Below are positions 7,326-61,015 of a stretch of DNA of 64,000 nucleotides, in pieces (positions within the stretch are counted from its first letter, which is position 1; each line of letters begins with the position of its first letter). The position numbers and the translations under genes were made by a program. The stretch is from sequence record OR413585.1. The stretch is one strand, 5' to 3'. The notes beneath the pieces are model-generated. The model saw nothing but the letters and a program-made list of their open reading frames with translations. It ran no database searches and was not told the origin of the DNA.

Positions 7326-7471
7326 TTAAAGACACGGTTCCGATAGAGAACTGGTCTTTACCTGCAGCGGTATACACCGCTAAGCTTTACCGGTAAACTT
7401 AAGAAAACACAAACGCAATTCTTCGTTACTCGCTTTCATCGCAGGTGAAAGCTCACTTAGGAATTCAGCTC

Positions 7472-7960
7472 ATGGCCGAAATTGTCATTCTTTCCTCATC
7501 CTCAGATTTAACGGAAGCACAAAATAAACAGCTGTTGGGGCTGCATTATAAATTTCTGAACCACCAACGTACCATACTCCATATCGAAAAAGGTGAGATT
7601 CCGAACCTCACTCTGGAGAAACTGTTGGCGGGGAACCGTGCCTGCGTTGCTCTGGAAGGGGGTACCCCTGTTGGTTACTGTTTGTATCGCGTAATCGCTG
7701 GGGTTCTGAAGATTCGTACGATGTTCGTGTCTGAAATGGCACGCCGCCGTAAAACGATGACGCAGATTTTTGATGCGCTTGATGTGAATGAACAGTTCAC
7801 CAGTGCGCATGGGGGAATATACGCTTGCCAGGAAGCTGGTATTGCGTTCTTTACCGCTCGCGGTTTTGACAAGACCGTCTCTACAGACGGACAATGGCTT
7901 GAATTTAAGAAGCAGGTTCCTGCGGAAGCAGATGAACCTTTAAGGACTGCGGTAGCATAG
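7472..7960 (+). CDS. GNAT-fold acetyltransferase-like protein
   Basis: VALEGGTPVGYCLY, IRTMFVSEMARRR (motif A-like, Gly lost), AGIAFFTARGF (motif B-like); ATG 7472 with SD AGGA. Confidence 0.6.
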   Translation: MAEIVILSSSSDLTEAQNKQLLGLHYKFLNHQRTILHIEKGEIPNLTLEKLLAGNRACVALEGGTPVGYCLYRVIAGVLKIRTMFVSEMARRRKTMTQIFDALDVNEQFTSAHGGIYACQEAGIAFFTARGFDKTVSTDGQWLEFKKQVPAEADEPLRTAVA

Positions 7961-7986
7961 TCCTGTTTTAGCACTCCTTACGATTA

Positions 7987-8012
7987 TACCTCACTATGAG
8001 TGGGGTATTTTT
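7987..8012 (+). terminator. intrinsic terminator nested in a larger stem
   Basis: ATACCTCACT-ATG-AGTGGGGTAT followed by TTTT. Confidence 0.6.
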
Positions 8013-8030
8013 ACGCGAGGAGTGCTATTT

Positions 8031-8249
8031 ATGTTTCACCGTCCTGGGTTTTCAGCTTTAAACACCGATGTCTGTTGGGCTGAGTACGAGCGGGTGAAGG
8101 AGTTCTTACCCGTAAATCCTAAACACATCAACGTGGGTACTATCGGGCGTGTTGCGTTCGATGATACTCCGCTGAGTACGTGTATTAAAGCAGCGCTTGG
8201 TACGCCGCCTGAGCCTCACCACCACGACTGGGAGGCAACTTTACCCTAA
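8031..8249 (+). CDS. 72-aa protein carrying an EF-Tu N-terminus-like segment
   Basis: SD AGGAG 8 nt before ATG 8031; YERVK..[11 protein letters not shown] versus EF-Tu [16 protein letters not shown]. Confidence 0.65.
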   Translation: [72 protein letters not shown]

Positions 8250-8260
8250 GGAGCATTAAA

Positions 8261-8683
8261 ATGGTTACCGCTATTCGCGAAACAAAATCACTATACGATC
8301 ATTTATCAGAAGAAGAAACAGCCTTATTCTACGACCTGTTACCTGAAACCAAAGCAAATGTTCAGTGGTGGTTACGTTTAGCGCTACGTGATAAAGTTGG
8401 GGAAACGCCGGTTAGTATTCTCGCACACACGTTGGACATGACACCCATGATTGAAATCGCGATTACCCGCCCTAAATTCTGGCGGCCTGGTATGGTGCGT
8501 GAGGCGTATCTACTCCAACGCTTAGGTGTTGCCCCGGAGAAGTGTTGGCGTAAGATGGACGACCATCGCTACCGTGAAGAAATTACGAATAGCCTCAACA
8601 CTATGTTGGCAATGAAACGACTCGGTATCGAACACGAAGGTTTCGAGTCAGCGGTACAAGCCTGGGTGAAAAGGAATAGCTAA
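8261..8683 (+). CDS. hypothetical protein
   Basis: SD AAGGAG; 140 aa. Confidence 0.75.
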   Translation: MVTAIRETKSLYDHLSEEETALFYDLLPETKANVQWWLRLALRDKVGETPVSILAHTLDMTPMIEIAITRPKFWRPGMVREAYLLQRLGVAPEKCWRKMDDHRYREEITNSLNTMLAMKRLGIEHEGFESAVQAWVKRNS

Positions 8684-8932
8684 ATGCAAAAAACAATCAT
8701 CGGAATAATGGTTAGTTCTTTCTGTGGTTTCCCTACCCCACAAACAGAACCCCAATATTTAGGCGCAGGTAAACCCGATCCGGAAGTCCGTAAGTTGCGC
8801 GAAGAAGCAAAAGCCAGAGTTCTTACTGAGCTGGAATCGTTGCTTCAGTCTCCGGTTATTTCACAATGGGGTATGGCAATAGATGTCACTAGAACTGATC
8901 GACGAGGCTATTATCTCCCACGACTTGTTTAA
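8684..8932 (+). CDS. hypothetical protein
   Basis: TAA-ATG abutment, SD AAGGA; 82 aa. Confidence 0.6.
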   Translation: MQKTIIGIMVSSFCGFPTPQTEPQYLGAGKPDPEVRKLREEAKARVLTELESLLQSPVISQWGMAIDVTRTDRRGYYLPRLV

Positions 8933-9383
8933 CGCGCCTGAGCGCTTCAAGGTCGTTACAGTTAACTGCGTTGGTGCAATGGGAAGGGGCATTGCCTTGG
9001 CGTGCCGAGAACGCTTCCCGTCGCTTTATAATGACTATCGCCAGAAATGCCGTAAAGAGCAAATCGTTATCGGTGAGGTCTATTGTTATCCTGAGGAAGG
9101 GGTAATACTCCTTCCTACTAAAACCCATTTTCGCTATAAATCGCAGATTTACTATGTCACGTCCGGCATTGATGCGCTGGCGCGACTAGGGGAAGACTTA
9201 GAAGGAGGGATTGCGATACCACCCCTAGGGATGGCTAACGGTTGGTTACGTTACCATGAGCGATTGGAAATCTTTATACACTTACAGAAACGACTACAGC
9301 ACACGGAGCAGACTTATCGATTCTATTTACCGGACACCCTGCTGAGGGAAGCAGAGAAAATCATCCCAAATAGTTTCAAATAG
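8883..9383 (+). CDS. macrodomain ADP-ribosylhydrolase (DarG-like)
   Basis: TVNCVGAMGRGIAL..FP, LPTKTHFRYKS, IAIPPLGMANGWL match macrodomain signature loops. Confidence 0.85.
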   Translation: MSLELIDEAIISHDLFNAPERFKVVTVNCVGAMGRGIALACRERFPSLYNDYRQKCRKEQIVIGEVYCYPEEGVILLPTKTHFRYKSQIYYVTSGIDALARLGEDLEGGIAIPPLGMANGWLRYHERLEIFIHLQKRLQHTEQTYRFYLPDTLLREAEKIIPNSFK

Positions 9384-12314: not shown

Positions 12315-12365
12315 AAAAATAAAAGCCTACCTACTCCCAAGGGAGTAGGTAGTTCTTTTTTTTCT
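12315..12365. terminator. bidirectional terminator
   Basis: CTACCTACTCCC-AA-GGGAGTAGGTAG flanked by A-run and T-run between convergent genes. Confidence 0.85.
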
Positions 12366-21162: not shown

Positions 21163-21217
21163 AAATAAAATAAAGCCTACCCACTCCCGTAGGGGGAGTG
21201 GGTACTGCTTACTTTTT
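21163..21217. terminator. bidirectional terminator
   Basis: TACCCACTCCC-GTAGG-GGGAGTGGGTA with A-rich 5' and T-rich 3' flanks between convergent genes. Confidence 0.8.
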
Positions 21218-35456: not shown

Positions 35457-35645
35457 ATGGCTGGAGAACTCGGTCGTGGGCAAGCCACAACGTTCATGTA
35501 TCGTGATGGGTTAGGTGCGGATGTAAACATGTCTCCGGATGACGAGATGGTTATCCCTGGACTTGACCCGGACGCAGGTGTGGAAGGTGGCGTTGACCCG
35601 TCGAAAGACGACGACAACTGCACCGGTGGTGCGTGCAAGATTTAA
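35457..35645 (+). CDS. 62-aa acidic peptide resembling the NrdA C-terminal redox tail
   Basis: SD GAGGA; ends PSKDDDNCTGGACKI; followed by a terminator. Confidence 0.75.
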   Translation: MAGELGRGQATTFMYRDGLGADVNMSPDDEMVIPGLDPDAGVEGGVDPSKDDDNCTGGACKI

Positions 35646-35654
35646 AATACGTAT

Positions 35655-35689
35655 TAGGGTGTCCATATGGACACCCTACTTATTTTTTT
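35655..35689 (+). terminator. intrinsic terminator
   Basis: TAGGGTGTCC-ATAT-GGACACCCTA plus T-tract. Confidence 0.8.
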
Positions 35690-36664: not shown

Positions 36665-37061
36665 TTACGATGAATACGTTGATCGTTTACTGGTCAACAA
36701 TATCGTCTGGGAAGACCACGGTCTAATGCCATGGCATCTGAAACTCCTAGCGGAGCGTTCAGAACAATGCGGTGGTTTGGAGTTCGTACTCACCGACACA
36801 CCAATTCCGGTACCTCATATTGCGCCGGTAGAAAATCTGTACTTCTTCGATGCTAATGTGAAGTTATTACAGCAGGTACTCTATACGCATGACTGGCGTG
36901 GTGGTTGTCAGTTCCCAGAGAACGTTCTAAAGCTCTCTGAGCGCTTCGGCACCGACATTGCATACTGTCAAACGTTCCCAAAAGACTTGGGACGAAACAG
37001 CGTGGTACTGTGGTATTACCCTCCGGTAAAAGACATCGTGAAAGTGATTATCGAACGCTAA
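36639..37061 (+). CDS. hypothetical protein
   Basis: ATG 36639 with SD GAGG. Confidence 0.7.
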   Translation: MAKKLFTVDYDEYVDRLLVNNIVWEDHGLMPWHLKLLAERSEQCGGLEFVLTDTPIPVPHIAPVENLYFFDANVKLLQQVLYTHDWRGGCQFPENVLKLSERFGTDIAYCQTFPKDLGRNSVVLWYYPPVKDIVKVIIER

Positions 37062-37116
37062 AAATAAAAGCAAACGAGTACCCCTAACGGGGTACTCGCG
37101 TTACTTATTTTTTTTT
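37060..37116. terminator. bidirectional terminator
   Basis: CGAGTACCCC-TAAC-GGGGTACTCG with A-run and T-run between convergent genes. Confidence 0.85.
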
Positions 37117-60426: not shown

Positions 60427-60969
60427 ATGAAGCAACTTAATACTCTCGGTCAGGATGATATCAAACCGATTCCATCTGATATGAAACGTGAAGACATTAT
60501 TCGCCACATCAATCAGATCGGTGACGTGTTTACGTTGTCCATGAAAGCTATACTGGAAGATGCTTTCGAAACCATTGCCGAATATCCGGTTGAAATCATC
60601 CCGCACACCATCAACGGCTACCAACGTTTCCTCGACACCATTACCAAAGGTAGTAGCGGGCGTATTATCGCGGGCTTTATCATCCGCTTTAAGTGCCTGT
60701 TGCAAGTAGAGCTGGGTGACGAGGTACTCCGTCGGCTGGAACACGAACTCATTAGCATGACCACCAACGACATTCTCGCGGCAGAATCAGGACAAGGTTA
60801 TAAAGACGGGATGTCTCTCTGGAAGATTGCCCACCCTGACTTGGGCGATGTTCAACCACCGTCTGAATTCGATGTGCTCGTAACCTATCTGTTACTGCTG
60901 CAAATTAAGAACCTATTAATTCGCGCTAATGCGCAGCGTGAAATTGATGCTAGCCAACCGAAAAAATAA
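60427..60969 (+). CDS. hypothetical protein
   Basis: ATG 60427 with SD GGAG, downstream of the terminator; track start 60346 unlikely. Confidence 0.7.
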   Translation: MKQLNTLGQDDIKPIPSDMKREDIIRHINQIGDVFTLSMKAILEDAFETIAEYPVEIIPHTINGYQRFLDTITKGSSGRIIAGFIIRFKCLLQVELGDEVLRRLEHELISMTTNDILAAESGQGYKDGMSLWKIAHPDLGDVQPPSEFDVLVTYLLLLQIKNLLIRANAQREIDASQPKK

Positions 60970-61015
60970 AACGTACCTCTCTCCAGACGGAGAGAGGTAA
61001 CGCTTGTTTTTTTTT
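60961..61015. terminator. bidirectional terminator
   Basis: TACCTCTCTCC-AGAC-GGAGAGAGGTA with A-run and T-run between convergent genes. Confidence 0.85.

Follow-up and report, generated by a model that had tools for sequence, protein, structure and literature searches.

We analysed a window of 64,000 nucleotides from sequence record OR413585.1 (positions below refer to this window), with the focus on a 72-aa ORF on the plus strand, the orthologue of SPN3US ACQ60_gp074. Over positions 7400–8700 the window is 100% identical to Salmonella phage SPLA5c and 97–99% identical to SPN3US and its relatives, which identifies it as an SPN3US-like Salmonella jumbo phage; its relatives are 240-kb jumbo phages of the genus Seoulvirus. 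The gene order runs from an SMC-like protein through several small ORFs to a GNAT acetyltransferase and the 72-aa ORF, and continues with a 140-aa protein (phrog_11720), an 82-aa ORF, a macrodomain protein and a transglycosylase (Table 1). The order recurs in Machinavirus and Erskinevirus, two genera of Erwinia jumbo phages, and in broad terms in Wellingtonvirus. Specifically, the GNAT gene lies immediately 5′ of the small gene in Seoulvirus, Machinavirus and Erskinevirus, while in Wellingtonvirus one gene intervenes. The GNAT of the window has no NCBIfam or PDB match, and that of Erwinia phage ChrisDB is annotated as RimI-like. For the downstream 140-aa protein, phrog_11720 is the sole family match in Pfam, PHROG and NCBIfam searches. 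Further along the window, intergenic inverted repeats flanked by an A-run and a T-run (12316–12363, 21167–21215, 35644–35689, 37060–37113 and 60961–61012) look like bidirectional terminators, several of them with a similar stem (CCTAC..CTCCC).

Table 1. Features of the locus around the 72-aa ORF; residue numbers refer to the 72-aa protein unless EF-Tu is named.
Feature	Positions	Strand	Remarks
GNAT acetyltransferase, phrog_3810	7472–7960	+	weak Pfam matches
Conserved leader hairpin	7969–8027	+	fold energy −32.2 kcal/mol, z −6.9
72-aa ORF, ATG 8031 to TAA 8249	8031–8249	+	AGGAG Shine-Dalgarno (SD) at 8018–8022
N-terminal conserved helix, residues 12–25	8064–8105	+	AF2 helix 12–25, best-scored part of the model
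EF-Tu strand β1 copy, residues 32–39, HINVGTIG = EF-Tu H11–G18	8124–8147	+	
Degenerate P-loop, residues 39–46, GRVAFDDT vs EF-Tu GHVDHGKT	8145–8168	+	
Helix A equivalent, residues 46–57	8166–8201	+	AF2 helix at 47–55
Variable C-terminal tail, residues 61–72	8210–8246	+	
Stand-alone macrodomain protein	8883–9383	+	DarG antitoxin macrodomain match: NCBIfam E 1e-30, PADLOC E 4e-32

The 72-aa ORF is a real gene that is selected at the protein level. Its product gives full-length profile matches to two families of jumbo-phage small proteins, phrog_28329 and phrog_12626 (E 1.1e-44 and 7.4e-17, respectively), and pairwise dN/dS within the family is 0.08–0.25, with dS near or beyond saturation. The family recovered by protein searches is small and confined to jumbo phages. 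The gene is also carried by contigs of public 'RNA' runs, which, being assembled contigs, speak for its presence only. Insertion at the 3′ end of the ORF is polymorphic: an SPN3US-type insert of 551–557 nt replaces 8204/8210–8247, the last 12 codons, and carries an extra 172-aa gene (phrog_14325; L012:2707–3225). In several SPFM phages (LR535901–LR535912) the region matches in 21–22 short pieces, and the predicted proteins (P0008–P0011) are block-permuted versions of the 72-aa protein that look like scrambled assemblies or records.

The preliminary description of this DNA held that the small protein carries a copy of the EF-Tu N-terminus, and the family-level comparisons bear this out. With E. 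coli tufA (NC_000913.3) as the reference EF-Tu, BLASTP aligns residues 23–57 with EF-Tu residues 3–37 without gaps (14/35 identical, pairwise E 4e-5), and it confirms the 8/10 identity to EF-Tu that had been claimed for a 10-residue stretch; the gapped pairing of EYERVK with KFERTK, proposed alongside it, is supported by no aligner and is unproven. The single sequence does not reach significance in database searches. Against 177,635 PDB sequences, all six of its matches (E up to 10) are EF-Tu, at a non-significant E of 0.11–1.6; Pfam GTP_EFTU (PF00009) gives no match; the NCBIfam EF-Tu models give E 0.013, with TIGR00485 at 14.2 bits, below its family cut-off of 522.4. Significance arises because relatives are added to the profile. 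A profile of 6 close orthologues matches EF-Tu in the PDB at E 0.002–0.04, and a profile of 17 family members does so at E 7e-9 to 3e-6, the top 59 matches all being EF-Tu, followed by eIF2-gamma. Consistently, hhalign aligns residues 31–58 with EF-Tu residues 11–38 at a probability of 95.9% (E 5e-9). Significance in profile searches and conservation in orthologues, both set as tests beforehand, were thus found.

The likeness to EF-Tu rises with distance from the window phage. The ChrisDB homologue by itself matches the EF-Tu NCBIfam models at E 6e-7, the pEa_SNUABM_29 protein has an EF-Tu-like 10-residue stretch, and in Machinavirus and Erskinevirus proteins 12 residues equal EF-Tu H11–H22 exactly. 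The best PDB matches are EF-Tu N-terminal fragments (chains 5i4r_C and 2hcj_A) and full-length EF-Tu. The likeness spans about 30 residues and ends near the start of switch I. The copied segment is close to the tryptic N-terminal fragment of EF-Tu that stays bound. As judged from these alignments, residues about 29–58 descend from β1, the P-loop and helix A of bacterial EF-Tu (residues about 9–40). The codons of the invariant motif differ synonymously among the phages and from tufA, with only 3 of 15 codons the same at identical residues in Huxley, and this variation rules out a recent DNA capture of tuf as well as mimicry or conservation of tuf at the RNA level. An accidental resemblance, or a captured tuf fragment left over without function, would agree with a single sequence that is not significant against the PDB (E 0.11–1.6) and misses Pfam, but it conflicts with the family profile (E to 7e-9), with the dN/dS of 0.08–0.25, with synonymous variation inside an invariant motif, and with the conservation of start, SD and leader structure. 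We consider it highly improbable and, as far as computation allows, already refuted.

Beyond the EF-Tu part, the 72-aa protein has a family-specific N-terminal helix of 30 residues and a tail that varies. In a 22-sequence family alignment, M1, C15, E18, Y19, R21, H32, N34, G36, I38 and G39 are invariant, while W16, F25, L26, V35, V41, C51, and A55–T58 together with P60 of the ALGTLP motif are nearly so. The helix formed by residues 12–25 is not EF-Tu-like, and its family-specific residues C15, W16, E18, Y19 and R21 are invariant or nearly invariant. No part of the family sequence is more conserved than the β1 copy, and this holds at overall identities of 31–45% too; H, N, G, I and G are invariant there, and V is present in 21/22 sequences. 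Some jumbo-family members read HPNVG or NMGKIG at this place, indicating that strict identity to EF-Tu is not obligatory. The P-loop drifts across the family, most in the Salmonella phages. In the 72-aa protein, D21 (EF-Tu numbering) is replaced by A and G23-K24 by D-D, confirming the change of the P-loop GK to DD that had been read from the window phage. In the helix A equivalent, the hydrophobic counterparts of EF-Tu L27, I31 and L35 are retained and other positions change; conserved Cys51 occupies the position of EF-Tu A30.

The earlier statement that a fragment of 72 aa cannot be a GTPase likewise stands, given a protein that ends after helix A and a P-loop that is not a Walker A motif. 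GRVAFDDT does not satisfy GxxxxGK[ST], and in Seoulvirus and Erwinia members the position of the Walker Lys is occupied by D, S, G, R, Q or M, with G23 usually lost too in the jumbo-phage family. A metagenomic clade keeps GK, followed by Pro, and no jumbo-family member has a complete GK[ST]. Furthermore, every alignment stops at EF-Tu residues about 38–41, and the protein ends 15 residues past the helix A equivalent, so that, unlike EF-Tu, it has none of the G2–G5 motifs (RGITI, DxxG, NKxD, SAx) and neither domain 2 nor domain 3. With neither the lysine of Walker A nor any of the subsequent G-domain motifs, it is no GTPase and is unable to bind or hydrolyse GTP in the manner of EF-Tu. A split GTPase was considered and rejected, as a search of low sensitivity found no second EF-Tu-like piece in the nearest complete phage record.

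Named relatives of the protein are encoded by Erwinia phages, in which they are annotated as 'putative elongation factor Tu' or 'putative translation elongation factor' (ChrisDB gp215, Huxley gp203, Parshik, Machina and pEa_SNUABM_8). They belong to the same family (phrog_12626), have 41–51% identity and occupy the same place after the GNAT gene. At 107–110 aa, they are longer by a C-terminal extra part of about 40 residues that has no similarity to EF-Tu. They keep HVDH in the loop and an Arg at the Lys position. The GenBank label 'elongation factor Tu' overstates these proteins. By eye, a short stretch of their C-terminal extension can be compared with β3/switch II of EF-Tu ('YVAHVHP' versus 'YAHVDCP'); this assignment was rejected, since an HMM of the extension missed EF-Tu among 2000 shuffled decoys.

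Over the 60 nt upstream of the start codon, the leader forms a hairpin in which the SD is sequestered. The outer stem pairs 7969–7979 with 8017–8027 and brings an anti-SD CUCCU against the SD AGGAG. The inner hairpin, at about 7986–8008, is terminator-like, with a U-run behind it and TATG (7995–7998) in its apical loop. The SD is sequestered alike, at the same distance, in 15 of 16 family members, which comprise four genera and metagenomic relatives, and both arms of both stems show changes across these members. Within the 64-kb window the architecture occurs once. RNAalifold predicts nothing on the raw MAFFT alignment of the leaders, in which indels shift the 5′ arm, and the structure appears when each sequence is folded separately. 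The phiKZ non-virion RNA polymerase has TATG as its motif for late promoters and start sites (PMC4666361); Erskinevirus members lack the TATG. By analogy with phiKZ, we speculate that a transcript starting in the loop, and hence without the anti-SD arm, would be translatable, and that read-through from the GNAT gene would not. The leader hairpin may gate translation, for example by permitting it only when transcription begins within the hairpin or once the hairpin has been cleaved.

To look for the EF-Tu piece in other phages, we used tblastn and a back-translated pattern scan of IMG/VR. In T4-like phages of the genus Muldoonvirus (Serratia, Cronobacter), proteins of 68–141 aa carry the module at the C-terminus, and their profile matches EF-Tu alone (E 5e-6 to 2e-4; EF-Tu residues 9–41). 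In a marine family (the P0022 family, labelled 'EF-Tu-like GTPase'), proteins of 60–100 aa carry the module at the extreme N-terminus, and the genes adjoin replication genes of temperate-looking phages. The profile of this family also matches EF-Tu alone (E 8e-7 to 5e-5); D21 does not vary, and at K24 the residue is in most cases I, F, L or V. The motif is present as well in a 119-aa protein of Shewanella phage 1/4 and in a protein on an 85-kb contig, which we regard as candidate cases. For the marine, Shewanella and L041 cases the pattern required HVNVGTIG, so the conservation of their motif is partly ascertainment. By a hand estimate, about 10–20 chance matches to HVNVGTIG are expected in a collection of that size, and what counts for the pattern-found cases is similarity reaching beyond the pattern.

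The Muldoonvirus gp023-like and marine mini-proteins resemble the 72-aa protein in being short (60–140 aa) and in carrying the same EF-Tu residues, but their flanks, the position of the module and the genomic context are unrelated to those of the jumbo-phage family, and some of them, unlike that family, keep GK[ST]. Outside the module, the proteins and neighbour genes of the phage groups share nothing. Unrelated flanks together with the lack of common neighbour genes indicate a host rather than a phage partner. In addition, only a few members of these families have a complete Walker GK[ST] while the strand is kept, implying that selection is not for nucleotide binding. We found no paper in the literature on these phage EF-Tu-like mini-proteins or their function.

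Several further observations concern the same phages and contigs. The N-terminus of Muldoon gp023 (L004:2195–2300) weakly resembles the phage's own major capsid protein Gp23 (E 0.001 genome-wise, BLASTP 0.17). The resemblance falls in residues 252–280 of gp23 and not in the Gol region, neither PS2 nor VP8 shows it, and chance is its probable source. On IMG/VR contigs of 200–530 kb (L028, L029, L043, L055, L063, L069, L071, L072 and others) there are full-length EF-Tu-like genes, whose products of about 390–430 aa have an intact GHxDHGKTT and are in many cases of an unusual '...DIAKGGTV' type; besides the host tuf, such genes are a possible source of the piece. Elsewhere, on several viral contigs, the 5′ end of tuf (18 residues) runs straight into unrelated sequence (L031:414–776; L040:5814–6314, minus strand; L049; L081), and these joins may mark the junction of an element integrated in a tuf gene.

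Structure prediction with AF2 gives no confident fold, with a pLDDT of 55.8 for the 72-aa form and 45.7 for the 109-aa Erwinia form. In both models, helices flank an unstructured strand/loop with a pLDDT below 50. Such models agree with a protein that folds on a partner or within an oligomer, and the low confidence may also reflect nothing other than shallow alignments (11 and 22 sequences). Look-alikes from the ESM Atlas are uninformative.

One explanation that we regard as a serious possibility, though one on which we would not settle, is that the β-loop-α unit is an exapted relic which serves as a folding or oligomerisation core in a protein whose function is unrelated to EF-Tu. The conserved positions of helix A are hydrophobic (the equivalents of L27, I31 and L35), and presumed surface positions have been replaced. 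Going by the general fold of the G domain and not by coordinates, we take the L27, I31 and L35 positions to be buried and inward-facing in EF-Tu. Conserved residues that are presumably buried would not normally be available for mimicking native EF-Tu, which argues against simple surface mimicry. A lone strand, moreover, cannot form a sheet, in keeping with oligomerisation and with the poor monomer models, and the family-specific C15, W16, E18, Y19, R21, C51 and ALGTLP lie outside the EF-Tu part. In one variant of this explanation that may be entertained, a homo-oligomer would bind nucleic acid or a ligand bearing phosphate, like engineered P-loop β-α prototypes; the Arg kept at the Lys position in the Erwinia forms would suit a relic, but the loop of the Salmonella phages is acidic (DD) and unfavourable for phosphate binding. 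A structural relic also leaves unexplained why the strand should match EF-Tu letter for letter in several protein contexts that have nothing else in common.

No bacterial protein is more abundant than EF-Tu, and it is targeted repeatedly in conflicts between phage and host and between bacteria (Lit, Doc, CdiA, Tse6 and TreTu). The T4 Gol peptide with the Lit protease, and the Doc kinase, link phage infection to EF-Tu; Lit cleaves EF-Tu at G59-I60, Doc phosphorylates T382, and Gol binding involves EF-Tu domains II–III. The preliminary description had named Lit and Doc as examples of the toxins that a mimic or decoy might be directed against. Their sites, like the domains involved in Gol binding, lie outside the copied residues (about 9–40), and the 72-aa protein therefore cannot be a substrate decoy for either. 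The two named examples are thus unsupported, and the more general proposal, that of a role in non-enzymatic mimicry or interaction, is a reasonable reading of a conserved, EF-Tu-derived and GTP-dead protein.

The only described toxin with its target residue inside the copied segment is TreTu, which comes from the same host genus as the window phage. TreTu, a Salmonella T6SS Rhs ADP-ribosyltransferase (TreTu/TriTu), ADP-ribosylates D21 of EF-Tu; it needs the GTP-bound form, and its modelled contacts involve helix D and switch I (PMC9825190). The 72-aa gene also lies a few genes 5′ of an AdfM/DarG-like anti-defence macrodomain. AdfM is reported to be a chimallivirus anti-DarT factor (DNA ADP-ribosylation), with homologues that include Asesino gp217 (PMC13309987). 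The macrodomain protein of the window is the counterpart of AdfM, and the region of the 72-aa gene thus contains a validated counter-defence gene. Among the PADLOC profiles this neighbouring macrodomain alone finds a match (DarG), and neither the 72-aa protein nor its ChrisDB homologue does.

In favour of a protein that acts as a decoy or inhibitor of TreTu-like toxins modifying the EF-Tu P-loop, alongside a macrodomain that removes ADP-ribose, are the location of D21, the TreTu target, within the segment of EF-Tu that is copied, its invariance in the marine family and its occurrence as Asp or Glu in the Erwinia forms, and the DarG/AdfM-like macrodomain nearby. The window protein, however, lacks D21, having Ala there, and the position is A, T or G in the window phage and its close relatives. 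In addition, TreTu is an interbacterial toxin rather than a known phage defence and is specific for GTP-bound EF-Tu, whose helix D and switch I are absent in the 72-aa protein, and AdfM is reported to counter DarT, that is, ADP-ribosylation of DNA. Adjacency to the macrodomain is weak evidence too, given that the gene order is conserved across the whole phage group. We consider a toxin decoy unlikely; the role is weakly supported for the window protein and more plausible for homologues that keep D21.

The other neighbour to be weighed is the GNAT. RimI acetylates the N-terminus of EF-Tu (PMC9079301), and by analogy the 72-aa protein could be a partner, regulator or substrate mimic of the upstream GNAT, whose gene sits directly 5′ in Seoulvirus, Machinavirus and Erskinevirus (one gene apart in Wellingtonvirus) and is annotated as RimI-like in ChrisDB. 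Yet the copied part corresponds to EF-Tu from about residue 9 onwards and is internal to the phage protein, whereas RimI acts at an N-terminus; the GNAT has weak Pfam matches and none in NCBIfam or the PDB; and no GNAT gene adjoins the homologues in Muldoonvirus and the marine family. A GNAT partnership is, in our estimate, very unlikely.

Our best guess, offered tentatively, is that the 72-aa protein serves as an EF-Tu-specific module for mimicry or interference and is not an enzyme. In true translational GTPase paralogues the β1 strand is known to vary freely, so that the fold alone does not account for a strand that stays identical to EF-Tu. The recurrence of the EF-Tu piece in unrelated phage proteins likewise favours a role that is tied to EF-Tu itself, and the anti-defence macrodomain gene a short way 3′ also speaks for such a module. 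The piece would then be kept as an EF-Tu-specific recognition or assembly element, in a protein that is probably largely unfolded when alone. Such a mimic would offer the N-terminal strand and helix of EF-Tu to a host component common to all Gammaproteobacteria. Candidates for this component are EF-Tu itself while it folds or assembles, a factor handling its N-terminus, or a defence protein aimed at the N-terminus, and the effect would be to compete with that component or to divert it.

A wider generalisation is conceivable, and we put it forward with considerable doubt. Phages of Gammaproteobacteria may repeatedly have captured or shuffled the first ~30–40 residues of EF-Tu into small GTP-dead proteins. 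These would make up a class of EF-Tu-specific interference modules with no earlier description, which would poison or redirect EF-Tu biogenesis or ribosome engagement, or would disarm host factors directed at the P-loop region, with the SD leader gating translation of the module in the jumbo phages.

The labels on these mini-proteins in GenBank and JGI, as elongation factors and GTPases, are corrected by this analysis. A conserved phage protein, putatively gated in translation, that has only the first strand, loop and helix of EF-Tu has no described precedent, and it is less easily set aside as a relic given that other lineages of phages possess this piece too. Should the protein act on EF-Tu or on a reader of its N-terminus, it would reveal either a point at which translation is attacked in a new way or a counter-defence of a new kind, and would also provide a minimal peptide tool for probing that point.
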